Of a stretch of DNA of 48,800 nucleotides, positions 15,665 through 48,785 are shown in pieces. Made by a program: the position numbers and the translations under genes. The DNA is from Klebsormidium nitens (taxonomy: Eukaryota; Plantae; Klebsormidiophyceae), in the NCBI GenBank assembly GCA_000708835.1, contig DF237126.1, positions 1 to 48,800 of the forward strand. The letters run 5' to 3'. Numbering within the stretch: the stretch's first letter is position 1; the number at the start of each line of letters is the position of its first letter. A model generated the notes under the pieces. The model had not been told where the DNA came from. It saw nothing but the letters and a program-made list of their open reading frames with translations, and ran no database searches.

Positions 15665-18600
15665 TCACCCGCCGTTCAGCAGCCGAGTCAGTCGGAACAC
15701 CTCCCCCTGGCCGCCGTCTACTAGCCGCCGCTCGGTGTGGCACGCCGTGAGCTGCCGTAAGAGCAGCTCGAGCGCGGACTGGGGTGGCCGGCTCGTTGGG
15801 GAGGCGAGGGCTAAGACGGAGGCGCTGAGGGTGTCGGCGACAACTTCCCGCTGGCTGTGCGAAAGGAGGTACGCAACCGGAGACGAGGAGGGGTCCTCGT
15901 ACGCGAGCAGCGCGAGCACGTCCTGCAAGGAGAAGGAGAGAGGGGTGAAAAGATGGCGGTAATGGGGACACGGAGGGGTCCTTACATGCAAGCAGCGCGA
16001 GCACGTCCTGCGGGAGAACGAGAGAGGGGTGTGAAAGTGGCGGGAGCCGATNNNNNNNNNNNNNNNNNNNNNNNNNNNNNNNNNNNNNNNNNNNNNNNNN
16101 NNNNNNNNNNNNNNNNNNNNNNNNNNNNNNNNNNNNNNNNNNNNNNNNNNNNNNNNNNNNNNNNNNNNNNNNNNNNNNNNNNNNNNNNNNNNNNNNNNNN
16201 NNNNNNNNNNNNNNNNNNNNNNNNNNNNNNNNNNNNNNNNNNNNNNNNNNNNNNNNNNNNNNNNNNNNNNNNNNNNNNNNNNNNNNNNNNNNNNNNNNNN
16301 NNNNNNNNNNNNNNNNNNNNNNNNNNNNNNNNNNNNNNNNNNNNNNNNNNNNNNNNNNNNNNNNNNNNNNNNNNNNNNNNNNNNNNNNNNNNNNNNNNNN
16401 NNNNNNNNNNNNNNNNNNNNNNNNNNNNNNNNNNNNNNNNNNNNNNNNNNNNNNNNNNNNNNNNNNNNNNNNNNNNNNNNNNNNNNNNNNNNNNNNNNNN
16501 NNNNNNNNNNNNNNNNNNNNNNNNNNNNNNNNNNNNNNNNNNNNNNNNNNNNNNNNNNNNNNNNNNNNNNNNNNNNNNNNNNNNNNNNNNNNNNNNNNNN
16601 NNNNNNNNNNNNNNNNNNNNNNNNNNNNNNNNNNNNNNNNNNGAAATACGAGGGCTTTGTCGGCCGTAAGTGCGGATTGGTTGCATGAAGCCCCCTAGCA
16701 CTCTTCGTTGCGGATTAAGAGGCTCTACGAGGATTCCATAGTAAGGAGAGGCACTGAAAGCACGAGGTGAACAGGAGCAGCGAAGTTGGTTTTGACAGGG
16801 GTCAACGGGGACGAGGCGGGCGGTGCGGAAATGGGAAAGTGGGTTTGATAATTAGGGGCAGCACGTTTGAAGCGGTACGGAATAACGAAGGGTAAATTTG
16901 CAGTATGCCTCAGTAAGACCGATATCTTTGGCTCCAGCATGTACCGTGGATCAGCGCACCGACGGCCACATCACTAACCAAAAAAATCTGCCAATTTGCC
17001 GCGACGCAACCTCCTCACACGAGGAGATTGAGAGAGACGGAGGCTTCGGAATCTCTCACCTCCAGATGCGCATCCTGCAACGCGCTGTAGCCCCGGAAAG
17101 TGGAGAGGACTCCGCGCGCGTGTTTGACGGCCTCGTCCAACTGAGATAGCTGCACGGAGCAATAGATATCGTCAGCCGGCAGAAAATTGTACCTTAGCGG
17201 CAGTATAGAGTGAGCTGAAAACCTTTTGGACTCCAGACTTCCTTATAGCCTTCACGACCTGCTACATAATGCGAGTGAATTGACAAAGGAAGCCAAAGCA
17301 AGCCAAAGGAGTGCGGCTCGACTGGTGGGCAGAGTGCTACGAGTATGCAGAGGTGCTCACCTTTATATACTCTACAAACTTTTGGCAATTCAAGAGGAAG
17401 GCCACGTTTGTCCGGCTATCCTGCACGGGATAAACAGAGCACGATAAGAGATGCGGGCGGGCAACACGAAAAGGACAAACGCCGGCTCGGAAATAGGCGA
17501 CTGTTCACTTACGAAGTCAATCTGACCCACTAAGCGCAGGCGATCAAGTGTCGTTTAAATTCTGTCACGATCTTGTAGGGCGCAAGATGCAGAAGAAGTA
17601 ATCGACTTCGCGCCTTTCAATGGAGTCTTTTGCGCACTCGTCGTGATTGTGGGCGGCAGTACGTCTACAACGCTTGCGCACGGACCTTTGACGGGGTGAA
17701 TCACGTCGCGGTGCTTACCTGCAAGATACTTGGATACCACATGGAGAGCGCCTGCAATGCGCCGTCGATCTTCCCTTCCCCTATGAGCTGCAGGGGCAAG
17801 AAGCCAATCAGCACTATATTGGATGTTCAAGAGCAAGAAGGCAAGCGTAAGAAGAGCATCCGAAACGAATGGGAGCGTCAACGGAAGGCGTGAAAGAAAC
17901 TCTCACAACGGTTCCAAAAGCCCAGATGACCTCCACGAGCGGTTTTCAACGTCCGCTTCGGCATCGGACTTGCAGAACGCTTCATCACTTGTTCCGCGAA
18001 GCTTGCGAGGGCACTCACCTGCCGCAGCTGCTTTCTTTCGTCTAGCGCGAACCAGCCTATGTCTTTATGGGCCAAGTGCCCGTTGCCGTTCTGGCTGCTG
18101 CCGGGCGCCGAGTGGACCCCCTCGGAGCCGTCAAACGCGTTCAAGGTGTCCTGGTAGCCGTAATGTAACAGGTAGCCGCGAACGATGCTGCGAGGAGTGG
18201 TAAGAATGCTGCCGTTTCAAGAGCTGTCAATGTGTGATGGGCTTTTTCTACATCCTGCTTGAAAGCAAGTCACTTCCGAAAGACGTCAAAAACTGCATTT
18301 TGAGGCCAAGGAACGAGGCTGTGTCCGTCCTTGCTTCTGAAGAGTGGCGTGACGTTATGATGTGACGTATTGCTTGCAGACGGATTAAAGAGCGGAGGCT
18401 GCTAGCGTCGTTAGCGCCTCAGCATAGCTCGAACAATTTTCGTTCAGTTCAAAGAAGGTAAAACTGTCCGGCATCATAGGCAGCAGGACCAAACCGATAA
18501 GCCGGGTCTTGCAAGGTCATTCAATGCTTGAAAAACTATCAGCACTTGTACAAAGTTGTGAACGAAGTTGCGACGGCGAAACATGGGACGAGCACCAACC

Positions 18601-30672: not shown

Positions 30673-33600
30673 ATGGCATCAGCGAATGGCGCCCCTCCGG
30701 CCGCCGCATCAGAGGCTGTGCTGAAGCAGTCGGAGGGCTTGCCGGCGTCAACCCCTGTGATCCGCGGCTACGACTTCTCCAATGGCATCGATTATGAGGC
30801 GCTGCTTGGCGCGATGGCCACCACCGGTTTTCAGGCGTCTAACTTTGGACGGGCCATCGATGAGATCAATAGAATGGTACGTCGTGCGGGGGTGGTAGTA
30901 TTGCAGCATTGCGTCTTGGGTCCATCTCCTAATGTCAGCATGTGGAGGTGCTTGATTGCGGGACCCTGGTGGCTTGCTGTCACCTAATAACTCCACTCCG
31001 TAGGGAAGGGCTTAATCAAGTTGGGCCACATTTGTCGTCACTAGAGTGGCTTTTTGTTGTGAGCTCCAAAGGCCTTCTCCGGAGCTTACGACATGGCCTT
31101 ACCACCACTGCATCATGCTCCTCACAATCAATCCTCTTCCACACTGATTCCATCACGACCTTGCTTGCGAAAGTATTCAACAACGCGCTTGCCTGCCCCC
31201 TCCTCCACAGTTGGAGTGGCGGTTGAGCGACGAGCCTGTCGTGGATGACTGCGATCCGGAGGAGCGGGACCCCGCATTTCGTGCCGCCACACGTTGCAAG
31301 ATCTTCCTGGGCTTTACCTCCAACCTCATTTCCAGTGGGGTCCGAGAGACCGTGCGCTTCTTGATACAGCATAAGCTGGTGAGTCGTTGCAGAAGTCCTT
31401 TAGAATTGTGGAGTGAGCTTCTCTTGAAGTGGCAGTCAGGTGCGTGAAAAATCAGGGAAGAAAGGCTGTGAGGGGCAAACATCGATGTGTGGCCTTTACG
31501 GGTGGCAAACTAGTTCGACTTTTCCAACCCCGTTCTGGAAATTGAGATGCATTGCATCTCATGAACAGGGGCGATTAGTTTTGGTTTCTCCATTTTGAAA
31601 ACAATCTTGAGCAGCGACAGTCGAAGCACGGACATAGCCACCAGCGTGGTTGGCACTTTGAAAGTTTCAGCCTGTCTGCCGGGACCCGCTCATAAGGGGT
31701 AGACACGGGGCTGCGAAATAAGGGGCATTAAACCAGATCTGGGGCAAAAGCGCTTTAGTAACTGGATCATGACGACTTACGACCAGTGGATACGATTCTG
31801 GGCCCTCCGGCTAATGGTTTCCGACTGTAAGAAACCCAAATCTAGGCGATCTTAACCTCTCCGCTAGACAGAAACGTGTTCCATGGACGATGGGCGGTCG
31901 TACCAAAAATAGCAGTATAATAAGAAGGAAACGGAAAGCACGACGACGAGGGTTACTGATATCTCCCTTTTCCAGGTGGACGTCGTCGTAACGACCGCAG
32001 GGGGCGTCGAGGAAGACCTCATAAAATGTCTGGCGCCAACGTACCAGGGCGCCTTTTCGCTGGACGGGGCGGCCCTCCGAGCGCGGGGGCTTAACCGGAT
32101 TGGTAACCTGCTGGTGCCGAATGATAACTACTGCAAGTTCGAAGACTGGGTTAACCCGATTCTGGACCAGTTTTTAGCGGAGCAGAAGGAGACGGGGCAG
32201 CTGTGGACACCGTCCAAGATCATCGATCGGCTGGGCAAGGAAATCGACGACCCAGATTCGTGCTGGTATTGGGCCCACAAGGTGGGTCGAAGTTGGCTAC
32301 ACGTAGTTCTGTTTCATCTGGCTAACCTTGAAAAGATGGATACAGGGCAGCGTCCAATTTTGGCACCATTGGTTGTTCGGGCTGTTGCAAAACCCGTGAA
32401 AATCTGGCAAGGCATCAGGATAGGAACCAAATTGTCTGTCAAGAAGCAAAGAGGCGTATTTACCTCACTGTTGATGCACAGTGGGCTAAATGCAGGTGTC
32501 CGTTTAGGCTAGAGTCTTTTGGTTCTGCAGTATTGTGGCAAGGGGGTCTGACTCTCCGAACCTCCGAAAGAGGTTCTGACCCCTCTGACCGTGACTATTC
32601 ACTTGAGGCTGGCCCATGAGTAGATCCGAATCATCCGCAAGAGCGCTGAACAATGCATGCGGCATCAGCGAGATGGTTGCTTGGTGGGAGAACAACTTTT
32701 CCGAGGCCTCTGCAAATCTTCCATACTAAGACAAAGTTGTCTTCTGTTTGCAGAACAACATTCCGGTGTTCTGCCCTGCACTCACAGACGGCTCGTTGGG
32801 GGACATGATCTACTTCCACTCTTTCCGACACCCGGGCCTTGTGGTCGACATTGTCGAAGGTGAGCCCCTGGAGACGTGGGCTGTCGCCCCTTTGACGAGA
32901 ACAGCGTTGTCATTAAGAAGGGCTTTTTACCACCGGCTTGGCATCAAGATTTGCAGCCGCTTGCAACCATTTTCACGGCAGCTCAGAAGGCCGCACTGGG
33001 ATTAGCTAGTCGCTTCTTGCCTTACAGGCGAAGCCTGAATTTGCTGAACAGTGCTCAACGTTCTGCGCTTTACGCCGAATGCGTCCGTTCTGACACCGCC
33101 CCTCTGTGCCACGTGTCAGACATCCGACGGATGAACGGGCAGGCCGTTCATGCCGCGCCGCGCAAAACGGGGGTCGTCATCCTCGGGGGAGGGCTGCCGA
33201 AGCACCACATCTGCAACGCAAACCTGATGCGGAACGGCTCCGATTTCGCGGTGTATGTGAATACGGCCCAGGAGTTCGACGGCAGCGACTCGGGCGCGAG
33301 CCCTGGGGAAGCCGTTTCGTGGGGCAAGATAAGAGCAAACGCGCAGGCCGTCAAGGTGAGGCACGATGCTTCCGGCTAAAAGTGCACGATCCAAGGTTCT
33401 CAGTTGCAGCTTCGGACGGGTCCGGAGTAAAGCTAGAGGATGGTTCCCTGGCTATGGTGTTGCTATGTTTGAGGGCCGAGTTTCGATGAGAATGTTGTTC
33501 TGGCACCTGATTGCATCGCTATCATTGTCGCCTTTGCTTGCAGCTTTGAGCGGGCTTCAACCCTCTTTGACACTTTACCAACGGAGAGACTGGTCTTCCT

Positions 33601-34289: not shown

Positions 34290-36500
34290 TTTCCTTACCC
34301 ATGTCAGCGAAGAAAGCTTCTCGCGGAGTTAGCCCGTTTTCTACAGCTTGCTCCCCACCCAAGCTCTGCTCCCTTATCTGTCCCCGCACCCTGTGCCCCA
34401 TCCAATCTTTCCCCCGCCAAGACGCGCGGTTCTTGTCAATCGATTCCGTCCGGTCGCCAAAAGCGCGTTTCAGATGACCCAGTGCTGACGTCACGTGACG
34501 TAATCGCATCCGTATCGCTCCGCAGCCCTCCGCTCCGTGTTGGCAAGCTCCGCAGCGGGATGCCCGGGCAGCCCCTCCGCTCCGCAGCCCTCCCGGTCCG
34601 CTCCGTGTCGGCAAGAGCCGGGAGTGGGTCTTTCCAGCTTTTCGCCCGCATCTCTAGTTGCTCCAAACACTCCGTTTCGATCTTTCAGGACGTCCGAACG
34701 GCATAGCAGCAGCGGGCCCCCGTCCGCGGCATTGTGAACGCCCGCACGAGCCTATTTACATCGTCTACCGTGCTTCCTACTCGGACGGAAAACACTGCCC
34801 CGGTCGCAAAAGCAGCTGCGCACTTCATACTAAACTCCTCCTGAAGAATCTTGTCGGATCGAATCTGTACCCGGAAAGTCGCAGTCTGACGGAATCGACG
34901 ACTGCACGCAGGGGGTCGATATTTGGTGCTTCAAGGACGTTGACTCCGGGCAGAGAGAGACTAAAGAGAGCGGAGTTCCGCTTTCAATCTGGCGGCAAGC
35001 TCGAGGGCGGCTTCCAATCCAGGGTTATTTCCGCTCTCGTTCCGTTGGGCGGCTTCCGCGCGGGCGAGGTCGAGAGAACTGGACGGAACATGGGAAGGTA
35101 CGGTCATCAAACATATGTTCAATCGGCAGGCGCAGATAATGATCGAGGTCGCGTATTATCGCGTGTTTTCCTCTGAGCTCGGAGGAACTTTTAGCCCGAG
35201 CTTTGTATCTAGCAAGGGATTTATCCAATACGAATTGGGCCGGAGAACGAGATTGTTGCGCGCTCAAAAAGGAAGTATGGTCCACACAGCCCTTCCATAT
35301 CAAGCTTGGCACGCTCAAAGCAAGGGCACGTTGTATGAAAAGAACCGGTCACGCTGTCAGATTCTTGCGTGTCCTTCTCGGTCCAAGGGTACGATCGTAG
35401 AAAGAGCGTGTCCGCTCCAATTTGGTACCAAGGTTCTCTCGGCTCCCGCGGGGCCCTCACTTTCCTAACATGGGGTGTCAGAGTCATGCCAACGGTGGCT
35501 CACCTGAGCAGCAGGTAGCTGGGGCTGAACGACTGCAGCGTTTGCAGGAGGTTTGCAGCGACCGGTCCACCCGGGCGGCCGCCACCCGGTCGCCCTTCAG
35601 GTGCAGCATGCCGGCCTGGGTCAGCGCGGACAGGCCCTTGGGAAAAGTCACCGGGGATGTGTCAGCTTCGAAGTCTCCGGAAAACCGGAACACCCATCTG
35701 AAAGAAGGGCACGGTGAACCTTCCCGTGGGGCTTGATCTCCTGGTTGTGAAGACCTCAAACTCTTCTAGACCTCGAGTTCCAATCGATAAGAAGAGGTCA
35801 GATTTTGGGACCGCCTCGGACGTCCCTCCGCAGTTTGCGCTTCGGCTCAACTAAAGGCAGAGGCCCAATGAGGGGTCCAAGGCACGTGCCTGAATATTGC
35901 TCGTTAACTCTGAGCTTGGTCGAGATTGCCTAGGGGCAGAGCTTACGAACGGGTATGCTGTCGGCGTAGGCGTGTGATAAGACGAACCATGGCCTCTATA
36001 AAAGTGCGCGCATATTGCCTACAATCAATCGACGTTCTTTTGAGTGGATGATCGATTGACTTCGTCCTTTGAAAATCCCAACGTAATTAACACAGCACGC
36101 TCGCTGACGAAGTGCATTGGGCAAACGTCAGCAAGTGTCGTCAGCACACTGCTCTGCTGACCTCGTACCCGAGATCCGCTCCGCTGTCAAGGGTGCAGAG
36201 CGGAAGCGCACTGTGGAAGCGGAGATGCGCTCCGAAGGCCTCGTCAACGAGGAGCGGCACGCCGAGAGAGTGGCATATGCCGGCAAGGAAAGTGACGTCA
36301 CTGCAGCGGGGGATGAGCGGACAGCCGTCAGCGGATTCAAAGCTCGGCACCGTGGGCCCGCGAGGCAGGTCGAAAAGCAGAAGTGCTGTAGGAGCGCTAT
36401 GAATTCGCGGAGGTGGCGCAATGCTGACACTCTGGTGCGCAATCCGACTGGTGAGATAGATACATCTGATAGATGTGCAGGCCAGAGAAGACAGAAAAAG
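34290..36500 (-). pseudogene. Pseudogenised, 5'-truncated duplicate of the last three exons of decarboxylase module 2
   Basis: Exon-like blocks 36300-36162, 35636-35504 and 35078-~34290 are near-identical to 41955-41805, 41245-41124 and 40812-38742, and the flanking intron sequence is also conserved (36300-36490 vs 41955-42140). Lesions: a 12-nt deletion (ADLGYE), an AAG acceptor, an 11-nt frameshifting duplication (ctgcaaac ctc ctgcaaac), an in-frame TAG at 34963-34961, and further indels. Confidence 0.88.
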
Positions 36501-37299: not shown

Positions 37300-38741
37300 T
37301 CCATGCAGCGAGCTTTGTGTCGGAGTGGTAAGTTGCTGACTGAGCAAGTAAAAAGCATTTTGCTGGCACTGGCTTCCATATGCTTTTCTGTTCACTCGTC
37401 TTTCCACCTGAATCTAGTGTGGTAACTAATTGCGAATCTGTGATATTGTTTTGGTGAGAAAGTTGACGGCTCTGTTTTAAAAAGTCAGAAGATGGGCCTG
37501 TGCATGCGAGGAGGGCATGCAAGGGGCTTCGATTTTGAAGACACCATCAAAGTTCGAAGGAGGGTAATTTACATAGCAGGTCTTTCGGGGCTGAAACAAT
37601 TTGCTTTTTCCTGACTGTTTCTGCCTACAAAAGGCCCTCCTGAAAGTTCATTGGCTCTGCCAAGATTGTCTTCTCTATGTCTCTCCTGTTGGACTGCTGT
37701 CAATAGTTCTTTGATGCCGTTCTGCAGGGTCAGGCCGGGGAACCGTAATTGCACCGGTTTGGCGCTATGGGGGCTTAGGCAGTATGATAGGATTTTTAGA
37801 AAATTTCTCACTGTATCCTCTTGTTGACTCTACTTCTGTCATAAGCGGCTGGTAGCATAGCCCCTTACGTACTTCGCACTGCTAAATTGCCCAGAGCGAT
37901 GATTCAATTGAAGTTGTTCATAAGGCCCCGCGCATGAGGATTCTGAATCGCTCACATATTGGCTTGCATGGTTCAACTGAACAATATGGTTCATGGTTCA
38001 ACTGACCAATATGGTTAAGTAACATCATATGCGGAGTGTTGCAAGCCGTGATACATGTACTGAGCCGCGTGCGCCGTAGGATTATATACAAGTGATTCAG
38101 ATGCCTACAGCCAACAAGGAAGATACACAGGTTTACCTGACGGGTGCATCCGATCCAAATGCATGGTGTGGGTTATACCATATATATACATCTTGACATG
38201 TCGGGCAAGCATGTTCAGGTTTTGACGTGAGTTTTACAGGCCGGTAAAGTATGGCATATGCAATTGAATGTTGATTAATCAACTTCACAGGCTTGTTGAG
38301 ACTACGTGCGCCACCATGGACACTGAGCACGTCGCATCGGTTGGTACCGTCCATGGATTGCTTGCCTTCAGATGACCACGTATACGCATGATGCAGAGGC
38401 TGGCTTAGCAGCGTTTGCAGATGGAGTCCCGTTGAGAGCACGGTTGAACACACGACCGTCTGCCGCGCGCAACGTGCACATGTGCATGTATGCGTCGGCC
38501 CACGCTTGATCGATATAGGAATATGTGACTCTGAATTGTAACCGTCTGGGCATGCCATTTTAGAACACGGAAACGTGCGGAAACTCAACCACTCGGTCGA
38601 ATCTTGAAGCACGCGACGTGTATACATTGCGGTCTGCCCACATGTCAAGGAAGAGAAAACCTTTGCAGCCATGACGCTGAATCACAACTCCGCAACCTCA
38701 AGGAGCTGTCACTTAAGCTTTTGGAATACTCCCAACGTACT

Positions 38742-41700
38742 TTAGTTTATGTCAGCGAAAAATGCTTCCCGCGGAGTCATCCTGTTTCTTGTAGCTTGCT
38801 TTCCCTCTAAGCTCTGCTCCTCGATTTGTTCCTGCACCATGTGCCCATCCAATGTTCCCCCCCGCCAAGACGCGGTTCTTTTCCTTTCCGTCCGGTCGCC
38901 GAAAGCGCGTTTCAGATGATCCAGCGCTGACGTCGCGTGACGTAATACGCATTTGTTCCGCTCCGCCGCCCTTATCTCCGCATCCCCGGATACCGCCCCT
39001 TCTTCCGGCCCTGCCGCTTGCTCGAGACCTTCTAGAACTTCTCGGAGCTGCTCTTGCGCCGACCGCCCAACCCGGGAAGCTTTACGCAGTTCCAAGTCGA
39101 GGGCCTCCTCTAGGGGCCTCCTAGCGGATCCTCCGGGTGGCGCCCGTCTCGGCCGGCTCAAGGGGTAGCCTCCAAGACACCGGATGAAAAGCAGGTCCTC
39201 GCTGGCGCATTCCAGGGCTGCCGCAACCGACTCGTTTCTCGAAAAGGCCTCCTTTTGCCGCCCGGTAAACGGACCTTTACTGACGATCTCTCCCGAGCCG
39301 TATTCCATTAGTTGCAGCGCTTCTCGAACCAAGCTACCCGCTTCTAGGTAGCCCCTCTTTGCCCTTTCAAAAGCGACTTCTAGCGCCTCTAGCCGGGACG
39401 AGGGCTTACCGGCAGCGTTGAAAAGCTCGGCGAAATTTGGTTTGCTTGTCCGACGCTTCTCCCGGCTCGCCACACTCTGTGCGCGAGCACGTTTCGCGTC
39501 CGTCAGCGCAAATGGGTTTTCCAACTGAGCTTTCCGCCCTGCCGTTTCCGCTTCCTTCCCTCGCTCTTCCGTTTCCGCCCCACTAAACTCAGCGTTCACT
39601 GCCGAATGACTGCTCTCCGTTTCTACCCCCCCTTCCTCCCGCCACGCGTGCAGGACTTGCGTTACTCTAATCTGCTTTCGACAGAGAATGCTCTTAAGCG
39701 TCTGAACCTCTATTTCGTCTGGCAACTCTCCTAGGCTCTTCGCTATCTCCTCTAACACAGCCCCGGCGCTAGCAGCAACACTTCGAGGATCTTCATATTC
39801 CTGGCTTATAGCCTTTCTGTAAGTTTCGAAAGCCGCTCTTATCTCCATTCTTCTGACAGCCTCACTTTCGTCCAGGGCAGCCGAAGCCTGGTCCACCCAC
39901 GCGCGCATCTCTTCCCGCCCTTCCACATAAAGCTCCTCCAGCAAAGCCGGCAAACTCTCTTCTGAGCCGTTCGATTTTATCCCCGGTCCGTCCGCTACCG
40001 CCCATTTTCCGTCCGGCTGTGTCCGACTTCCGTCCGTTTCCGTCTCTGTTCCGTTCTTTCCCGTCCGCGTTCCGTCCGTTCGTGTCCGCCTTCCGTCACT
40101 TCTTGTCCCCGTTCTTGTTCCATTCGCTTCCTTCCGTATTGCATCCACCACTGAAGCTGAACCATTTGACCCTCTCTCAACACAATTCTCTCGCTGATCA
40201 GCTTCGCTCTCGTTTTCCGCTTCTTCTTCGGGCCTCCGCCTTTCCCACTCGCGCTTCGCAGCCTCAACTCGCCCGCCGATCTCGCTCTGTTCAAGCCAAC
40301 TCAACCCACAAAACCTCTCCCACTCGCTTTCAAAAGGCTCGGCGAGAGCCGGGAGCCGGTGTTTCCAGCTTTTCGCCCGCGCCTCTTGTTGCTCCAAACA
40401 CTCCGTTTCTATCACGCTCAGATCTTTCAGGACGTCCGAACGGCGCACCAGCGGAGGGCCTCCGTCCGCGGCTTCGGACAGGAGTGTGAACGCCCGCACG
40501 AGCCTATTCACATCCTCTACCGTGCTTCCTACTCGGACAGAAAAGACTGCTCCGGTTGCAAAAGCAGCCGCGCAATTCACACCAAACTCCGCTCGAAGAA
40601 TCTCGTCGACTTTGTATCCGGAAAGTCGCAGTCCGACGGTTTCGACGACTACACGCAGGGGGTCGATTTCCGGTGCTTCAAGGACGTTGATTCCGGTCAG
40701 AGAGCGGAGTTCCAAACTCAATTTGGCGGCAAGCTGGAGGGCGGCTTCCAAACCAGGATTGTTTCCGCTCTCGTTCCGTTGAGCAGCTTCCGCGCGGGCG
40801 AGGTCGAGGGAACTGGGCGAAAATTGGCGAAATTGCGGTTCAGACTTGTGTTCATGGCCAAGCGCAGGGAGGTTGCGTGGACCGTGTACTCAAGCAGAGT
40901 CAAGGAACTGCAAGCCAGATCTTCATAATGAAGCAGGGTATTAGCAGGACAGAGAGCTGACAACTTTTGTGGAGTCGATCCAACTTCACTGATACAGGCT
41001 CAAAGAGAGTTGTACACGGCTTTACGACGACCGCACACGGCAACCAAAGAACTCTCGGCCTCCCAAAAGCCCTCTGGCTTTCTTTGAGAGGAAACAAGAA
41101 AAGTAAAGCCCGCGGTGAGTCACCTGAGCAGCAGGTAGCTCGGGCTGGACGACTGCAGCGTTTGCAGCGACCGGTCCACCCGGGCGGCCGCTACCCGGTC
41201 GCCCTTCAGGTGCAGCATGCCGGCCTGTGCCAGGGCGGAAAGGCCCTGGGAGGAAGTCACCGGGGATGGGTCAGTCTTGAAGGCATTTGGCGGGGAGATT
41301 GGCGAGGAGTTTCGAAAGAGCGGCGCGGTAAGGTTCGCGTGGGGCCCAGTCTCCTGGTTTTGACGAACTTTGGACATGATTATCTCGTCCCAGTAGAGGA
41401 ATAAGTAGTCTCCAACGCTCTGCCGACGCTCTTTTCGCCAGGCTCTGCTTCTTTGAAGTTATCAAACCCACGAGGCAGCTCTGGACAACCAACAGCTTTA
41501 GACCCTCTGCGACCAATCGCCCGGCTCAATAAGCAACGGGAAGAGGTCCAATGATGGTCCAAGGCTTGTGCCTGAAGACTGCTCAGTGTTGCTGCACTTA
41601 CTCCCGACTGGCCATGGGCACACACGAGAAGTGGGTGGAACAATCGAAGAACGCTTCGAGGAGGAAAACAATCATGAAAGTCATTTTGCACCCTTTTGCG

Positions 41701-44700
41701 TGAGTGAATGATCGACTCCTCTCTTCAAGCCCAATACAGCACGCACTGGGACTAGATGTGATGGGCAGATCTAGGCAGAGTGGATTGTGCGATGCTTTGC
41801 TCACCTCATAAGTGGCGTGGATGACGACATCCGCTCCGCTGTCAAGTGCGCAGAGCGGAAGAGCGTTATGGAAGCGGAGATGCGCTCCCAAAGACTCGTC
41901 CACCAGGAGAGGCACACCGTGAGAGTGGCATATGCCGGCAATGGAAGTGACGTCACTGCAGTGGGGGATGAGCGGAGCAGCCGTCAGCGGGTCTGAAAGC
42001 TCGGCAGCGCGGGCCCGCGAGGCGGGTAAGAGGCAAAAGTGCTGCAGGAGCGCAATGCATCCGCTGAGAAGGCGCGATGCTGACACTTCAGTGCCTACTC
42101 AAAGTGGTGAGATAGATACATTTGCAGCCCAGAGAAGACGTATTAACGATGACGACGACCGGGTCTTGTCAGATGCACAGCAGCCCCGCCTTGACACAAT
42201 CCCGCTTGGCGTTGTTTTCTGTCAACCACTCGCTGAAAGACGGCAGCTTCAACGGGAAAGAGTGAGCAGACAAGCGAGGCACCATATGTAGATTGTCATC
42301 CATTTTTCCCACAATTTCTCCAAAACTTTCACCGGAAGGTCACCGGGAGGAAGACAGGGCACGTGCCTGCATAAGCCGCAGCTGGTGGGTGACGCCAGCA
42401 GCACGGCGCCCACGGTCTCTCCCGCCGCGCGCGCATCTTCCAGGGCGCCCGCGACCGCCTCCAGACGTACGCCACGCTCGGGCGCCCAGTCTGGTCCGGC
42501 GTCCGAAGCCACGTACAAGGGCTTCGCTCCCGAGAGGACCAGTGCCGGAAGCGCCGACTGTGATAAGCGACGCAAGAAACAGCGTGAGCAGTCAAAGGGA
42601 GTGCTTTTTTTGAAGTGTGAGGAGCCGTTGACGTTGGCTGCTTAACTCAATGATTGAGCCAATCGGGCCCCACAGTTTGTGCTTCTTTCCTAATCCCTGC
42701 AACGCTGTGCGCTCTCTTCTAGAAAGAGCTTGGGATTGAGCGCAAACGATATGAGCGCGGTCGTATCGGAGCGCGCACGAATCACCTGTTGCGAATGGGA
42801 AGGAACCCCAACAACCTGCAACCAGCACCAAGAGACTTAACCAGCAAACGCTGTGAGACATTAAGCAATCCCACTCAAACTCTCATTCTCTCAGATCGTC
42901 ATCCCACCTGAGAGTAGCTCTCCGGGAGTATCAGCGCATCCCCCGGCTTACACGTGGCCATCACCGCGGCTTGCACCCCACAGGCGGCCCCGTTGACCAG
43001 GAACCAGGTGCGGTCCGCGCCGAACGCCGCGGCCGCGAGGCGCTGCGCGTCGAGAATTGGGCCCTCGGGGGAGGCTAGGTTGTCCAGTCCTGGGATCTCG
43101 GGCAGATCGTGGCGGAACACCTGCGGCGGAATGAGGCAGTGATGAGGCAGAGCTCACAATCTCGGCTTTTTCTGCCTTCTGCAATATCTAACAGAAGTTG
43201 TCTTTTTGTGGCAGAACAACTGCATTGAAATGGAGAATCATGAGAGAAAGTAGCAAGTCGTTTTCAGATTGTCCCTGGCTGGAAGGCTAGACGGATTTGT
43301 CCGCCACTTCGCCGAATGTCCTTGTTGTGGGTATGGTGACAATCCCGGGCCAGCTTCCATTTGACGGCCGCAACAACTGCGCGGAGAACACTTCAGAGAA
43401 GAGCCCTCCGACAAATGCGCAGTCAGCAAGCGAAACCTGAACGACACCTATAGAACCCGCCAGAAGGAAACGCAGCCTTCCTATTCTTACCAGAACAGTC
43501 TTCTCACAATGATGCAGAATCTGAGCTATATGCGTTGCAGCGAGCCTAGCGGGTCGAGGTTCTAGAGGACGTCGGAAAATGCTAAAAACTCAACAACAAC
43601 CACTTGGCTTGCTGCCCAACGCTCCCGACAGTGCTTGGTGATTCAAACAGCCACGTCCCTCTGAGCTTACGCTATAACGCATCCAGGAATAGCCTTTTCC
43701 AAATCTCTCAAGAACCTTACCGCATGGCCTAGGGCGTCTCTCAGCTCTGCCGGCGCTCCCGCCCCCTTCTTGTGTCCCGGAAAATAGAACGGCGCGTCGC
43801 TTCTTTCCGCGGCCTGCGTGACCGCCTCCCAGAGAGGCGATGTTTCTTGATCCAACGGCTCAGAATTTTCGACGTCCGAAGGGGACGAGGCGGGGTCGGC
43901 TCCTGAGCTGCCACGTGGCGCGTTGCAGGCAACGGCGATGCTTTGCAGAGAGGGATCCCCTCCGCCAGTGACGGTGCCGCCGGAGTCGAGGGTGGAGACG
44001 AGGAGCTCGATGGCCGTAGTGGTGATGACCTGTGGAAACAAGAGAATGCTCGACAATAAGATCCGCTGTCATTATATTTCAGAATCAGGGGGGAAGAGAA
44101 GGAATTAGGCGAAGGGGAGGGAGCATTTTGGCTGGATGTTCCAAGCTATGTTGAGGCTCTAAGAATGTTCCAAGAATGTTGAGGCTCTAGTTATAGCCTG
44201 GTGAACAGGAAAGAGCGAACCCTTGGCAGAGTCTGAGATTTTTAAAACTGTCGCAGGGAACGGAAGCGGCAGGAAGGAGAAACGGCGCTTGGCAGAATCT
44301 TTGAGACTCCGTTCAAGAGCCAGACATAATGGCGAGGGGGCCTCACCTCTCCCGGTGTCAGAACCGGGATGCCTGGCGGGTAAGGGCACAATAGCTCCGC
44401 GCAGATGCGGCCAACAGCGGCACTGGCGGGCACCTACGTAGAGAGCAGAAGAACGGACGCAGCAGGATTACGGTAAGAAGGTACATTTACCTGCAAGGGT
44501 TGACCTGACAATGAAGTAGATGAGGAAAGGGTCGTAAGGGACCCAATTGACGACAACACTCGATCATAGGTTGCAAAACCAGGGAGAAGTTGGTTGCAAA
44601 AGGCGTCAACCTCTGCAAGTCGGGGAAGTGAAAAACAAATGGGTGTAATCTCCATGGATCCCTCTCCTCCTGATGAAGATTATTTCCCTGTCATTTTCCG

Positions 44701-47700
44701 TGTACGATTTCCAGGTATTAACTGTACTCCCGACTGCTCCCAAAAGCCCCCTCAGGAGAGCAGCATCTTTCCTCACCCGCTCTGACTCGCTGAAGAAGGC
44801 CTCGCGGGGGCTCATCCGTGCCTCTCCGAAAATGCCCCTGCTGGCACCCCCATCTCCGCTCCGGTCCTCCAACCGGAACCCCCCTTTCTGCGCCGTTTCT
44901 GCCAACGATGTGAACGCGTCCACCATCCTATTCACATCCTCTTCCCGACTACCCGGCCCAACTGCAAACACAAGCCCGTTCTGCCACGGCAGCTCGGCTA
45001 TGACACCAGATTCTTCAACTAGGGTCTCGTCAGCCTCGTAACCAGACAGCCCAACGCCGGTGGTGTCAAGGGCCACCCGCAAGGGGTCCATTCCCGGGAG
45101 GTTGAGAACTTTGATTCCGGCGAGGGATTTGAGTTCCGCTCTTGCACGGGTGGCCAAGCGGAAAGCGGAGTCGAAGGGCGCGTTCACACCGGCGGAGGTT
45201 TGTCGGGTTGCTTCAAGGCGGGCTGCGTCTAGGGAGCTGCAGAAGAGAGGGGAAGTGATAACTGGACGGAAGCCCTTCGGTCTTCGCAAACTACACCTAA
45301 GCTCCCCTAAGTACAATGCATACAAAAAGTCAGAGGAACTCACAAAATCGATATCATTGGTCAAAAGGACGAATCGCAACTCGCCAAGAAGGATCATTGC
45401 ACAGTGATCTGATTATAAATCTGGATTTCACAGAGGAAGCCACCCGCAATATCGATCAAGTCACTATTCGATACACTTGAAGAATGCGAGCAGCCAGACA
45501 GCAGAGCACAGGCAAAGGACAATGCGCCTGCTCATATCTTAGCACGCTGAGGTTACCCGAACCTTCCACTCCAGGATTCATCTGGGATTTGAGCACACAA
45601 TTGAATGGACGGTGAGAAGTCGCCTCACCTCAGCAACAAGTGACTGGGGCGAGGAGTCTGGAGCAGCTGCAGCGACCAGTGCAGTCGGTGCGCTGCCACG
45701 CGGTCGCCGTTGAGGTGCAGCATGGCCGCCTGGGTGAAAGCGGAGAGCACCTGCGAGTTCGCCCGGTTCACAGGTTACTTTGCAATTACATCAAGGCGGA
45801 GAACGGCGTTTGTGCTTTTCGTTCGTGTTGTATTTGACTGAGCGTCGGTCTGAGACTTGGAAGAGCTCTCTATTTTTGGGATGAACAGTCTAGCTACACG
45901 AACTCGACAGCCCGGACTGGAGAGCTTTGAAGGGATTGCTTCTCTTTCAAGGGAGAAGAACAACGGGTCAATCCAGATCGTGGGCCTTGCAATCTTCAAT
46001 GTGCGTTGCAGGGACCGTTCCTCATTTCGCAGAACTTTGGGAAGGTTTTCGATTGCTCTTACGAGAGAAGACACAAGAGACGCACGACTACCGTTGTATC
46101 ATTGATTCGACTGGTTGATTGGCCCAGAAGGAATGTAGGAATCGTAATTGGCCCAAAGCATGCGAACGAATTCAGACGGCCTAGACTTGCGCACGCACCT
46201 TGTGAGTAGATTGGATGGCTACGTCCGCCCCGCTTTCAAGGGCAGTTCCCGGAAAGGCGGGATGAAAATTAAAGTGGCCCCCGTGAGCCTCGTCCACCAG
46301 TAAGGGCACCCCAAACGCGTGGCAAACTTCGGCAATGCGGGAAATGTCGCTGCGAAAGACGGCAATGATGTCAACTTACGTCTACCTTCAGAACAGATAT
46401 AATCCCAAACAGGAGATATAAAGACAAGCGGAGACAGAGAGTCATTTCGAACAGTTAACCGGTTGTTCGAAAGCTGCAACTACGAGATATCACAACCTCA
46501 TGCAACCTGACCATCACGAAGGCCAATTGGAGGCTGCTGAGAGATGAACTCGCGTCCAGTCCCACTAACATGTTTAGCCTCTGCAAAAGTAGACGTCGTT
46601 GACAATAAATCACCATTGTTCACCAATTCAGCCCAAGCGCACGTTCGAGAATGTTTTCCAAAACCCCCTCTCAATCGCTACAATCACCTCAGCTTCTCTT
46701 ACTAAAGGAGGCTACTTACCTGCAGACGCCATGATAAGTGGGCGACACAATCAGCACTGCGCCGACCGTCTGCCCTTCCTCCCACGACTCCGTCAACGCG
46801 CGCTCTATCTCGTGGGGGGGCACTCCCAAGGCGATGCCCCAGCTAGAATCGTAGTCTGGCAGGACATACTTGGGTCGTGCACCAGACAGGACCATGGCGG
46901 AAACTGCAGACTGGGCAGAGAAACTAGATGTGGACGTAAACCAGGGACGTGACGCTGGTGAAGGGGTTTGGGAGTGTTCTGAGAAAGTTGGTTGAGCAAG
47001 GGCGTACGGACTGATTCTGGTCGAAATAAGGGAAGGACGAATAAGCAGGGAATGGCGCGGGAAATGATGATCAGCATTACGGTGGATGGTGGAAAGACGC
47101 AGAGGACTTTACTCGTTTCAAGCAAGAGTTTGTGGGTCCAATCCTGGGGCGGAGAAGATTGTCAAGGCCTGAAGGTGCTCTTGGATGCAAAAGATATCCA
47201 GATTGTGCACAGCCCAGATTGATGCAAGAAGGTGACAGTAGGTGGAGTTCAGTGTTGTCAAAGCCCTCCAAACAAACGGCAGTTCCCAGTCACAGAATCC
47301 TTGAGCGCATTCTTCACCGCCTCAGACTGAAAAATGAGAATTGTCAGATCTTGGTTGCAGAGGCCTCGCTTCTCACAACGACCTTGCTTTTGGTTGGTGC
47401 CAGTCAGTGTTACAAACCCAAAATGACAGTTCCAAGATGAATCAATCTATCAATGGCCTTTCCACGCCTGAACTCGCACCTGATGGCAGTTCCTTGGAAG
47501 TATCAGCACATCCCCCGGTTTGCATGTGGCCATCACTGCAGCTTGCACCCCGCAGGTCGACCCGTTGACCAGGAACCAGGTGCGGTCCGCACCAAACGCG
47601 GTGGCTGCGAGCTGCTGCGCCTCTTCGACGGGGCCCTCGGAAAGAGAAAGCCAGGGAAACCCAGACACGTCATGCTCGAACACCTAAAGATTGGTGGCGA

Positions 47701-48785
47701 TAGAGGTTCAGTGAGGCAGTGGCAAGAGCAAGGAGTTCTGAAGGAGACACGGACTTTTCTAGGAGCTTCATACGGCTGGTGCACCGTGCTGCAATGTGTG
47801 TGCCTGAGGGAGGAAGCCAGTTCGACTTTTGCTGCTTTGAGCATTGAGATCTGGAAGCTGGGTCTCTGACGGGTTGCGTAACTATGTTGGGTGGAAGAGC
47901 TGGACGCTTAGAGAGAAGCTGGGAACTGTGGACACAAGGCTCGATGACGCAAGTTACACTTGGATGCACTTCACAAAATCATGTGGTCGCAAAGATTTTC
48001 GTTTCCAATATGCAACACAATGTGGCCAGTCCCTAAGATGCACAGCGGGTTTCGAAAAGCTTCTTTCAAGTATTCAGCTCCAACGCTCCAGATTGTGTGT
48101 GTTGACATCATTTGCAGGACCATATAGACTCTGCTTCTCCTTGCCAGCACACCTTGCTAGAGAAAGCCTCCTTGAGCTTCGTCGGCGCCCATGCCCCTTT
48201 GTTGTGCCCAGGAGATTCGAAGGACACAACATTCCTCTCCGCTGCCTGCACCACTGCCTCAAGCAAGGGCGCCCTTCCACCTTCTTCCTTGCCGCTAATC
48301 CCATTACTCTCTGCTGACTCAGCGCAGTCAACACAGTCATCCTCATCAAGAGGTGCGTTTCTAGTCTGATGCTGGGGGTGGTGGGCCCCATATTCCAGCT
48401 CTGAGATCTTTCCTGGGCCCGCGGCAGCCCTGCATTGCATTCTGGTGGCTGCCCCATAGGGCCTTCTAGCATTTTCATGTAACCAAGAACTGGAGAGCAA
48501 GCAGGCAGTGCGGCTGACTCCAGATGTTCGCACTTGTTTTGGGGTTTCTAAGCTAAACCTAGCACATAAGGTGTTTGCTGCTTTGATTGATGAGGGTTGC
48601 AACCTGTGTGAGACCCGCTGCAATGAATGCTGAGGGCGTGTTTCAGTAGAACAACTGCTAATAAGAAACGGATCAGTGCAGCAGCTTACTCTACTAAATG
48701 CTGCTTCTCGCCTGGTCCTTCTGCAATGTCTGGACAGCCAATGTGGTGTCGCCCATGTCGCTAGAGAGACGGCAGCGTGCGCCAT
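38742..48785 (-). CDS. Tandem two-module Orn/Lys/Arg decarboxylase-family protein (fold-type-I PLP, OKR_DC_1): catalytic-Lys module fused to a Lys-less module; 13 exons, ~1634 aa, probable plastid transit peptide
   Basis: Exons (minus): 48785-48153, 47683-47480, 46910-46720, 46349-46199, 45750-45629, 45236-44777, 44433-44347, 44029-43721, 43120-42908, 42557-42367 (GC donor), 41955-41805, 41245-41124, 40812-38742. They total 4905 nt in one frame. Module 1: SPGHNKG, FGADRTWFLVNGST, PRNCHQS, SPTYHG, LVDEAHG, QSTHK, MSPREAFF, AELLCPYPPGIP. Module 2: FPGHKKG, HDLPEIPGLDNL, NGAA, DESLG, HATYE, SSSPSY, MTPREAFF then stop. The frame is open to the window edge, so the true start could lie upstream of 48785. 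Confidence 0.9.
40009..40125 (-). repeat. Degenerate ~21-bp (7-aa) coding tandem repeat within the module-2 insertion
   Basis: Protein period: ANGTRTG/TR-SDGRRTR/TDGTRTG/KNGTETE/TDGSRTQ/PDGKWAV/ADG. The plus strand shows recurring tccgtc. Confidence 0.7.
44134..44190. repeat. Short imperfect intronic tandem duplication (~30 bp x2)
   Basis: atgttccaagctatgttgaggctcta / agaatgttccaagaatgttgaggctcta in the intron between exons 44433-44347 and 44029-43721. Confidence 0.7.

Follow-up and report, generated by a model that had tools for sequence, protein, structure and literature searches.

A two-module OLAD-type decarboxylase gene of Klebsormidium nitens with complementary motif loss and a predicted single composite active site

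Analysis of contig DF237126.1 from Klebsormidium nitens (GenBank assembly GCA_000708835.1; the whole stretch analyzed, positions 1 to 48,800, is referred to here as the window of 48,800 nucleotides [nt]) revealed a minus-strand gene at 48785-38742 in which two decarboxylase modules of the OLAD type (group III, PF01276) lie in the same frame. The gene comprises 13 exons and encodes 1634 amino acids (aa). OLADs are group III, fold-type I, pyridoxal phosphate (PLP)-dependent decarboxylases of ornithine, lysine, and arginine and are kin of Bacillus SpeA and of Protein Data Bank entry 2X3L. A two-module gene had been described earlier from the DNA letters alone (the original prediction), and its presence in the sequence was confirmed. 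The residues of the family's active site are distributed over the two modules in a complementary manner. Judged from this pattern, modules 1 and 2 probably form a pseudo-heterodimer with one composite decarboxylase site.

The 13-exon model was built by hand from open frames, GT-AG boundaries, and the likeness between the two halves. Its translation contains a single stop, the terminal TAA at 38744-38742, and the splice sites are AG/GT throughout except for a GC donor after exon 10 (E10). The minus-strand exons are E1 (48785-48153), E2 (47683-47480, 204 nt), E3 (46910-46720, 191 nt), E4 (46349-46199, 151 nt), E5 (45750-45629, 122 nt), E6 (45236-44777), E7 (44433-44347), the junction exon E8 (44029-43721, 309 nt), E9 (43120-42908, 213 nt), E10 (42557-42367, 191 nt), E11 (41955-41805, 151 nt), E12 (41245-41124, 122 nt), and E13 (40812-38742), which ends in the TAA. 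Exon E8 runs without a stop from the tail of module 1 (VITTTAIELL..GGDPSL) through a 30-aa linker rich in S, P, A, E, and D (aa 653-682, 43832-43921) into FYFPGHKKG of module 2. The claim that this exon carries one continuous open reading frame (ORF) was substantiated by its 103 open codons and by spliced RNA across the junction.

Comparison of the two modules revealed 55% identity across 383 aa (E 4e-120), and FsOLAD was aligned end to end by module 1 and by module 2. Exons E3, E4, and E5 have the same lengths (191, 151, and 122 nt) and the same phases as E10, E11, and E12, respectively, which indicates a tandem duplication. PF01276 (the OKR_DC_1 major domain) was matched on E2 (3.4e-17, 62.7 bits) and E9 (6.7e-15, 55.2 bits), with weaker matches on E3 and E4, and PF03711 was matched on E7 of module 1 (1.9e-07, 31.9 bits, cutoff 24.2).

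Module 1 (aa 171-652, from the end of E1 to the start of E8, 43922-48275) contains the motifs NGST, RNCH, SPTY, DEAH, QSTHK, and CPYPPGIP. The corresponding cis residues are H278 (RNCH), D362 and H365 (DEAH), K393 (QSTHK), E515, and Y605 (CPYPPGIP; aa 603-610, 44362-44385, invariant in four taxa). Judged by these motifs, module 1 is a catalytically complete cis half. The codon of the predicted Schiff-base lysine, Lys393 (AAG, 46201-46199), is the last codon of E4, and the Lys393 column was 100% Lys in 74 homologues. The core of module 2 (aa 683-1075, 40422-43831) carries the PF01276 match on E9 but has lost the cis motifs, which read NGAA, ESYS, SPTS, DESL, and HATYE; the equivalent of E515 is Ala. 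In place of the Schiff-base lysine stands Glu904 (GAG, 41807-41805), the last codon of E11 and Glu in all four taxa.

The reverse was observed for two loops. Loop A of module 2 (aa 722-741, RHDLPEIPGLDNLASPEGPI, 43055-43114) is canonical and invariant, and its loop B (aa 932-944, QTLQSSSPSYLLL, 41126-41164) is a canonical SSSPSY segment. The counterparts in module 1 are degenerate. Loop A of module 1 (aa 214-230, EHDVSGFPWLSLSEGPV, 47627-47677), the equivalent of HDLPE..LDNL, is 3 residues shorter than the canonical form and carries the changes E to G and D to S. In loop B of module 1 (aa 421-433, QLLQTPRPSHLLL, 45631-45669), the invariant Ser is now Arg and the Tyr is now His. Module 2 therefore appears, from its motifs, to be a pseudoenzyme half that has kept the fold and both trans loops. 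The original prediction had listed these differences, and each of them was recovered: the pairs NGST/NGAA, RNCHQ/ESYSQ, SPTYHG/SPTSCG, DEAHG/DESLG, and QSTHK/HATYE (module 1/module 2), the reverse-direction pairs TPRPSH/SSSPSY and HDVSGFPWLSLSEGP/HDLPEIPGLDNLASPEGP, the AAG and GAG codons at the ends of equivalent exons E4 and E11, and the loop that is 3 codons shorter, which corresponds to 204 nt in E2 versus 213 nt in E9.

Relatives of the gene were sought by an exhaustive representative search with E9, which gave two exon-sized ORFs, and by a search with E13, which gave a third contig. The fused gene was found on three related contigs, L001, L002, and L003. Contig L002 belongs to a close relative (Logan assembly), and L001 and L003 derive from two Joint Genome Institute (JGI) metagenomes and share 88% DNA identity with each other. 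All three yielded stop-free models with equal exon lengths and an unbroken junction exon; the linker is 7 aa longer in L001 and L003. The reciprocal loss of motifs extends beyond this genome, being present in each of the four taxa.

To locate the differences between the modules, columns were chosen without prior selection of motifs. The six modules of three taxa were aligned with 74 single-module homologues, and 82 columns were at least 85% conserved in the homologues. Seven of the 82 survive in module 2 but not in module 1, and all seven lie within loop A (HD-L-P-E...L-D-x-L..P.G.I) or loop B (S-S-[S]-P-S-[Y]). Another eight columns survive in module 1 alone (R275, H278, Y338, A364, H365, H392, K393, and E515), as does the PYPPGIP region. 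No column (0/82) was lost in both modules. The cis motifs of module 1 and the loops of module 2 are invariant or nearly so in the four taxa. Loop A of module 2 is 90-100% identical between the four taxa versus a module 2 mean of 68%, and loop A of module 1 is 41-47% identical between the window and L001/L003 versus a module 1 mean of 71-73%. The discarded halves vary by lineage. In module 2 the cis motifs read NGAA/NGSA/NGAT/NGST, ESYS/SNCY, DESL/DESF/DETY/DETF, and HAT/QAS, and in module 1 the loop residues read G/C/E/E, R/R/S/S, and H/H/A/A across the four taxa, with TPSPSA at loop B of L001 and L003. The pair Tyr903-Glu904, which replaces His-Lys, is invariant in all four. Such complementary conservation is the pattern expected if the cis half of module 1 and the loops of module 2 form one working site and the reciprocal site is unused.

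Alignment with FsOLAD assigned these residues to known positions. P116-E117 of FsOLAD corresponds to the P-E of loop A (P726-E727 in module 2), S330-Y331 to the S-Y of loop B (S940-Y941 in module 2), and Y508 to the Tyr of PYPPGIP (Y605 in module 1). In FsOLAD, a single active site is lined by P116-E117, S330-Y331, Y508, and the PLP-Lys, and a hydrogen bond links E117 to Y508 (bioRxiv 10.1101/2024.06.04.597157). In the fused protein the P-E and S-Y pairs occur only in module 2, and the PYPPGIP Tyr, the Lys, and the stacking His occur only in module 1, so that the two modules divide the equivalents of this one OLAD site between them. The Schiff-base Lys, the ring-stacking His, and the pyridine-nitrogen Asp correspond to K393, H278, and D362 of module 1, all invariant in four taxa. 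Module 2 alone lacks this set, with E904 and S/Y at the His position, and has kept only the Asp. A complete canonical site is thus predicted for neither module alone and exactly once for the pair, and membership in the enzyme family would apply to module 1 or to the pair and not to module 2 alone. The original prediction had been less certain in placing the DLPE..LDNL segment on the trans side; this placement gains support, as the segment shows the same conservation behavior as SSSPSY and as its P-E belongs, in OLADs, to one active site with the S-Y of SPSY and the PYPPGIP Tyr, residues that here lie on different modules.

Fold-type I PLP enzymes form obligate dimers that share two active sites. 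Activity requires the dimer because each site sits at the dimer interface and contains residues of both subunits. The elements contributed in trans are a loop about 31-37 residues after the Lys and a loop about 30-35 residues before the NG(S/T)(S/T) helix; aspartate aminotransferase shows the same trans elements (Arg292 and Tyr70 of the partner subunit), and the TTSP loop of LdcI touches the phosphate of the partner. In LAOdc enzymes, the site lies buried within the dimer's interface and dimerization is required (PMC4832331, PMC8983666). In group II decarboxylases, the catalytic Tyr of one monomer acts on the PLP stacked by the other monomer's His, across the interface (bioRxiv 10.1101/404970), and Y331 of FsOLAD has been aligned with this Tyr (bioRxiv 10.1101/2024.06.04.597157).

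In the proposed mechanism, the gene product would be one polypeptide whose two modules go back to a green-lineage OLAD that was duplicated in tandem and fused in frame within this lineage. The module 1-module 2 pair would act as a built-in dimer with one canonical site per pair. Module 1 would supply the cis part, with Lys393 forming the Schiff base, His278 stacked on the pyridine ring, Asp362 and His365, Ser390 and His392 at the phosphate, Tyr338, Glu515, and, as the likely proton donor, Tyr605 of PYPPGIP. Module 2 would supply the trans part, namely, Pro726-Glu727 and Asp732 of HDLPE..LDNL and Ser938 and Ser940-Tyr941 of SSSPSY. The second, symmetry-related site, composed of the cis region of module 2 and the trans loops of module 1, would be dead and drifting. 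Pairing could occur within the chain, for which the linker of 30-37 aa appears long and unconstrained enough, or could be swapped between two chains. The substrate is predicted to be a basic amino acid (Arg, Lys, or Orn), by analogy with FsOLAD, which decarboxylates Lys, Orn, and Arg in vitro (bioRxiv 10.1101/2024.06.04.597157), and the reaction would probably take place in an organelle. The N-terminal extension (aa 1-170, 48276-48785) is Ser/Thr/Arg-rich, with acidic residues scarce over the first 110 aa (S+T 27, K+R 16, D+E 5), and is a probable organellar transit peptide by composition. Plant OLADs likewise have unstructured N termini (bioRxiv 10.1101/2024.06.04.597157).

Selection was analyzed by the Nei-Gojobori method as the ratio of nonsynonymous to synonymous substitution rates (dN/dS). 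The ratio for module 1 was 0.17 in every pair. For the module 2 core it was 0.139 (window-L002, dS 0.41) and 0.19 (window-L001, dS 1.1), and for the linker and the N-terminal extension it was about 0.45-0.64. Module 2 is as constrained as module 1 and is not decaying; neutral evolution of module 2 would have counted against the original prediction.

Maximum-likelihood analysis placed the module 1 sequences and the module 2 sequences in two sister clades of three sequences each with identical internal branching (SH-aLRT 99). The six module sequences grouped together (SH-aLRT 99), nested within a green-lineage clade of 28 rows (98), streptophytes plus chlorophytes, to which land-plant, Closterium, Mesotaenium, Coccomyxa, and Tetraselmis proteins also belong. 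This topology indicates one duplication and fusion event that took place before these taxa split and after their lineage parted from the rest of the sample. Single-module proteins of land plants and green algae are the nearest homologues, many of them named "arginine decarboxylase-like." Among the solved relatives, 2X3L ranked first, ahead of LdcA, AdiA, LdcI, and ODC; the plant homologue P0011 matched 2X3L with E 8e-44. No second two-module member of the family was found in the top 150 representatives (the longest 763 aa) or in the top 120 matches of a 763-aa query, with lengths up to 1335 aa admitted. The OLAD homologue of Chara braunii (P0178, 1274 aa) carries homoserine-kinase domains (PF00288, PF08544) and no second module; it represents either a different fusion or a merged gene model.

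Transcription was analyzed with RNA contigs from 4 runs in 4 studies placed on 38700-44699, which matched at 99% or more with zero differences. Joints were seen for E13|E12, E12|E11, E11|E10 (GC..AG), E10|E9, E9|E8, and E8|E7, and a loose contig end beyond E7 carries the letters of the end of E6. A 3.2-kb RNA contig extends from the 3' untranslated region (UTR), about 70-90 nt past 38700, up to E8/E7. As this contig reaches the 3' UTR, the TAA at 38744-38742 lies within the mature message and no further exon is joined downstream. For three of the four runs, the depth that passes from E7 into E8, with spliced and intron-7-retained RNA added together, is the same as that of the module 2 contig, which makes an internal start or promoter for module 2 unnecessary. 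Exon E1 is complete in at least 16 RNA runs. A single message covers both modules, as the original prediction requires; transcripts that end before module 2 would have refuted it. The E10/intron 10 boundary (last E10 base 42367, GC donor 42366-42365) is the sole non-GT donor in the gene; the RNA joint 41955|42367, with ends CT..GC on the plus strand, was present in all 4 runs. The GC-AG intron after E10 is kept in all four taxa (L001 11007-11008, L002 10754-10755, L003 7942-7943), and the equivalent intron of module 1, after E3, has an ordinary GT donor.

Several observations weigh against the composite site or narrow its reach. In each of the four runs, RNA that retains intron 6 (44434-44776) reaches about one-third of the depth of the spliced form; for intron 7 (44030-44346), about 10-15% of the depth is unspliced. 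Retention of either intron would halt translation inside module 1 and give a truncated module 1; with intron 6 retained in about one-third of the depth, the fusion is not encoded by every transcript. The intron-retaining RNA could be unprocessed RNA or could reflect regulated intron retention. The four available taxa form two close pairs, and dS to the distant pair is near saturation. That the loops of module 2 contact the PLP of module 1 is suggested by conservation and by the FsOLAD mapping, and the assignment of the loops to the trans side follows the analogy with group II decarboxylases and aspartate aminotransferase; for LdcI, AdiA, or ODC, no explicit literature statement was found that the PLP of the partner is bound by the TTSP/SSSP loop. 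Finally, the E117G exchange raised decarboxylation by FsOLAD, and activity is also seen in natural OLADOs whose loop positions carry T-G and N-N (bioRxiv 10.1101/2024.06.04.597157). The altered loops of module 1 alone would consequently not forbid a module 1-module 1 site.

This last point leads to an explanation in which module 1 is a whole enzyme that homodimerizes via its own altered loops, with a wider, OLADO-like pocket, and module 2 is a noncatalytic scaffold, regulator, or docking appendage. Like changes (P-E to T-G, S-Y to N-N, E117G) are tolerated or activating (bioRxiv 10.1101/2024.06.04.597157), module 1 of the window has S-G where P-E stands, and the conservation of some blocks of the module 2 insertion exceeds that of the catalytic modules, a hint that the insertion has its own role. 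An appendage would, however, leave unexplained why the loops of module 2 are invariant while its cis motifs drift and why the loops of module 1 differ between lineages with no fixed new state; a module 2-module 2 pair would likewise have no use for canonical Glu727, Asp732, Ser938, and Tyr941. We regard this explanation as unlikely. An OLADO-type oxidase was also considered for the composite site. An OLADO, the decarboxylase-oxidase variant of OLAD, would have Phe in place of Tyr508, with T-G for P-E and N-N for S-Y in its working site. In FsOLAD, Y508 decides between decarboxylation and oxidation (bioRxiv 10.1101/2024.06.04.597157). The oxidase was rejected, as the residues around the Lys393 site, Y605, P726-E727, and S940-Y941, are all of the decarboxylase type; the loops of module 1 itself (S-G, S-H) are partly OLADO-like but variable between taxa.

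A further explanation accepts the composite site and adds that the dead pocket and the 545-aa insertion of module 2 have gained a ligand-binding or regulatory function, which would make the protein an allosteric single-site enzyme. The invariance of Tyr903-Glu904 in four taxa and the purifying selection on the insertion (dN/dS 0.2-0.47), with near-invariant blocks at aa 1423-1542, speak for it; the remaining residues of the dead pocket vary freely among the taxa, the insertion has no domain or fold match (Pfam, atlas, AlphaFold2 [AF2]), and no ligand is suggested by the data. This version appears quite improbable. The broader notion that the chain goes beyond a dimer carrying one vestigial half, with the disabled pocket and the helical insertion now serving as a regulatory or docking device, is a tentative one that we hold to be doubtful. 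Module 2 might instead be a decaying tandem duplicate that is still read through, its fusion a functionless accident. It has no catalytic Lys, its C-terminal exons are cut off by a stop here, and a broken partial copy lies just downstream. Its dN/dS of 0.14-0.19 nevertheless equals that of module 1, its frame is unbroken across at least 950 codons in the four taxa, which are separated by dS up to about 1.1, and it is expressed and correctly spliced, whereas the true pseudogene nearby looks different. This very improbable reading was rejected on the basis of dN/dS and conservation in four taxa. A wrong merging of two adjacent genes, or an assembly artifact, has nothing in its favor except the tandem arrangement. 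The modules lie 90 nt of open frame apart within one exon, the junction is spanned by RNA in four runs with no differences from the genome, and the arrangement is repeated in three independent assemblies from other sources. The RNA contigs led to rejection of this explanation, whose probability is negligible.

The original prediction had treated module 2 as a plain second module. The trans loops are kept as described, but two features depart from that picture: module 2 carries a conserved insertion of about 545 aa, and its C-terminal subdomain is absent here. The insertion (aa 1076-1620, 38787-40421, minus strand) occupies a loop of the C-terminal domain that measures about 25 aa in module 1. 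Glu, Ala, and Arg are abundant in it, and its low-complexity variable center is largely missing in L001. The near-invariant blocks include two 30-aa stretches with 25/30 and 26/30 invariant positions between the window, L001, and L003. These two stretches, which lie within aa 1400-1570 (38937-39449), exceed the catalytic modules in conservation but match no known family. The insertion gave no Pfam match and no atlas match above 0.69, and a protein search with the module 2 C-terminal domain gave no match. An AF2 model of E13 alone (module 2 C-terminal domain plus insertion) was mostly helical and of low confidence (mean predicted local distance difference test score, 40.6). Possibly the insertion has an added role in docking or regulation.

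Three features in or beside this region go beyond the original list: the early stop of module 2, an exon relic, and a third copy. Module 2 of the window ends after ..TPREAFFADIN at the TAA, without the C-terminal exons that bear PYPPGIP. In L001 and L003, the same exon ends in ..FFADIER|GT or ..FFADTDQ|GT (L001 15281-15370 and downstream) and joins two more exons, E14 and E15 in L001, that match E7/E8 of module 1; there the PYPPGIP of module 2 is degraded (SHHPQSSP, CGPQSSP). A relic of the lost last exon of module 2 (LVTTLDSGGKTS versus LVSTLDSGGTVT in module 1) was detected by tblastn at 37394-37429 on the minus strand, 1.3 kb downstream of the present stop. The match is weak (E 0.34), and the spliceable E14/E15 of L001 support its identity. 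Farther downstream, tblastn and blastn revealed a third, partial and broken copy of module 2 (34301-36492, minus strand) that covers E11-E13 with intron flanks in four blocks of 80-83% DNA identity and is disrupted by frameshifts, stops, and an internal deletion of 1.36 kb. Neither L001 nor L003 showed a counterpart, an absence that points to a recent local reduplication, and the copy is probably a pseudogene fragment specific to this lineage. Its frameshifts, stops, and deletion give a picture of neutral decay at this locus, in contrast to the intact module 2.

A deoxyhypusine synthase gene (31976-33379, plus strand; PF01916, E 2.6e-34 and 1.2e-32) lies downstream of the decarboxylase gene, tail to tail with it, and is also its neighbor in L001 and L003. 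That a spermidine-using enzyme stands beside a polyamine-type decarboxylase may be coincidental, a by-product of conserved gene order. Elsewhere in the window, an N run (assembly gap) at 16053-16642 accounts for an apparent dip in GC content at 16-17 kb.

If the proposed site is correct, the gene would be a young, traceable case in a family other than that of serine palmitoyltransferase, in which duplication, fusion, loss of one site, and reciprocal relaxation are legible in four genomes and the adjoining true pseudogene copy serves as a decay control. The reciprocal losses would amount to a natural genetic labeling of OLAD motifs as cis or trans, useful for the recently recognized OLAD/OLADO polyamine and alkaloid enzymes of plants. 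The protein would also offer a single-chain, single-site scaffold for asking whether one site suffices for activity, stability, and regulation. Were the pocket or the insertion regulatory, a symmetric homodimeric decarboxylase would have turned into an asymmetric, self-regulated single-site enzyme, a natural case of an obligate PLP homodimer rebuilt as catalytic and regulatory subunits within one polypeptide.

We know of no experimental structure of a plant OLAD or OLADO. Eukaryotic OLADs are of algal origin and widespread in green plants (Wood et al., bioRxiv 10.1101/2024.06.04.597157). Both modules resemble them by sequence and in the tree, module 1 has every conserved active-site residue of the cis half, and the composite site would carry the P-E, S-Y, and Tyr of the decarboxylase type. 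The other members (among the best 150 and best 120 listed) have one OKR_DC_1 module and are presumed homodimeric, whereas this protein has two, one of them without the Lys; the complementary loss of site halves and the 545-aa insertion set it apart. The group II decarboxylases (plant aromatic amino acid decarboxylases, DDC, and GAD) share a catalytic Tyr loop that follows the Schiff-base Lys and acts across the interface. They are, however, homodimers with two equivalent sites from another decarboxylase group, and the likeness is a structural analogy only.

Dead or impaired paralogues that are kept to complete or activate a partner, with one shared site per heterodimer, are represented by AdoMetDC/prozyme and DHSc/DHSp of trypanosomatids. 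These systems resemble the fused protein in that a duplicated dead paralogue is retained under selection in a polyamine-related pathway. They differ in folds and cofactors and consist of separate polypeptides, and an impairment of module 1 alone has no support here.

To our knowledge, there are few examples in which the halves of such a site sit on different polypeptides, serine palmitoyltransferase (SPT) being the chief one. In SPT, the Lys-bearing LCB2 and its Lys-less paralogue LCB1 share one interface site. The original prediction that the architecture is undescribed stood in part: no description of a fused form was found in the literature for this decarboxylase family, but single-chain SPT is a precedent. 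According to a citation in PMC5371807, the coccolithovirus enzyme has both SPT paralogues as one gene, a natural single chain (Han et al. 2006). As in that enzyme, two paralogous fold-type I modules lie in one translated chain, documented here by the ORF, the RNA, and three other assemblies, and the Lys-less module is under purifying selection (E904 in four of four taxa, dN/dS 0.14-0.19). SPT belongs to another family, the alpha-oxoamine synthases, catalyzes a Claisen condensation, and is membrane associated. Its duplication is ancient and pan-eukaryotic and its fusion secondary, whereas here both are recent and confined to one algal lineage. Single-chain SPT is the closest precedent, and the architecture, as read from sequence, appears to be newly described for this decarboxylase family.

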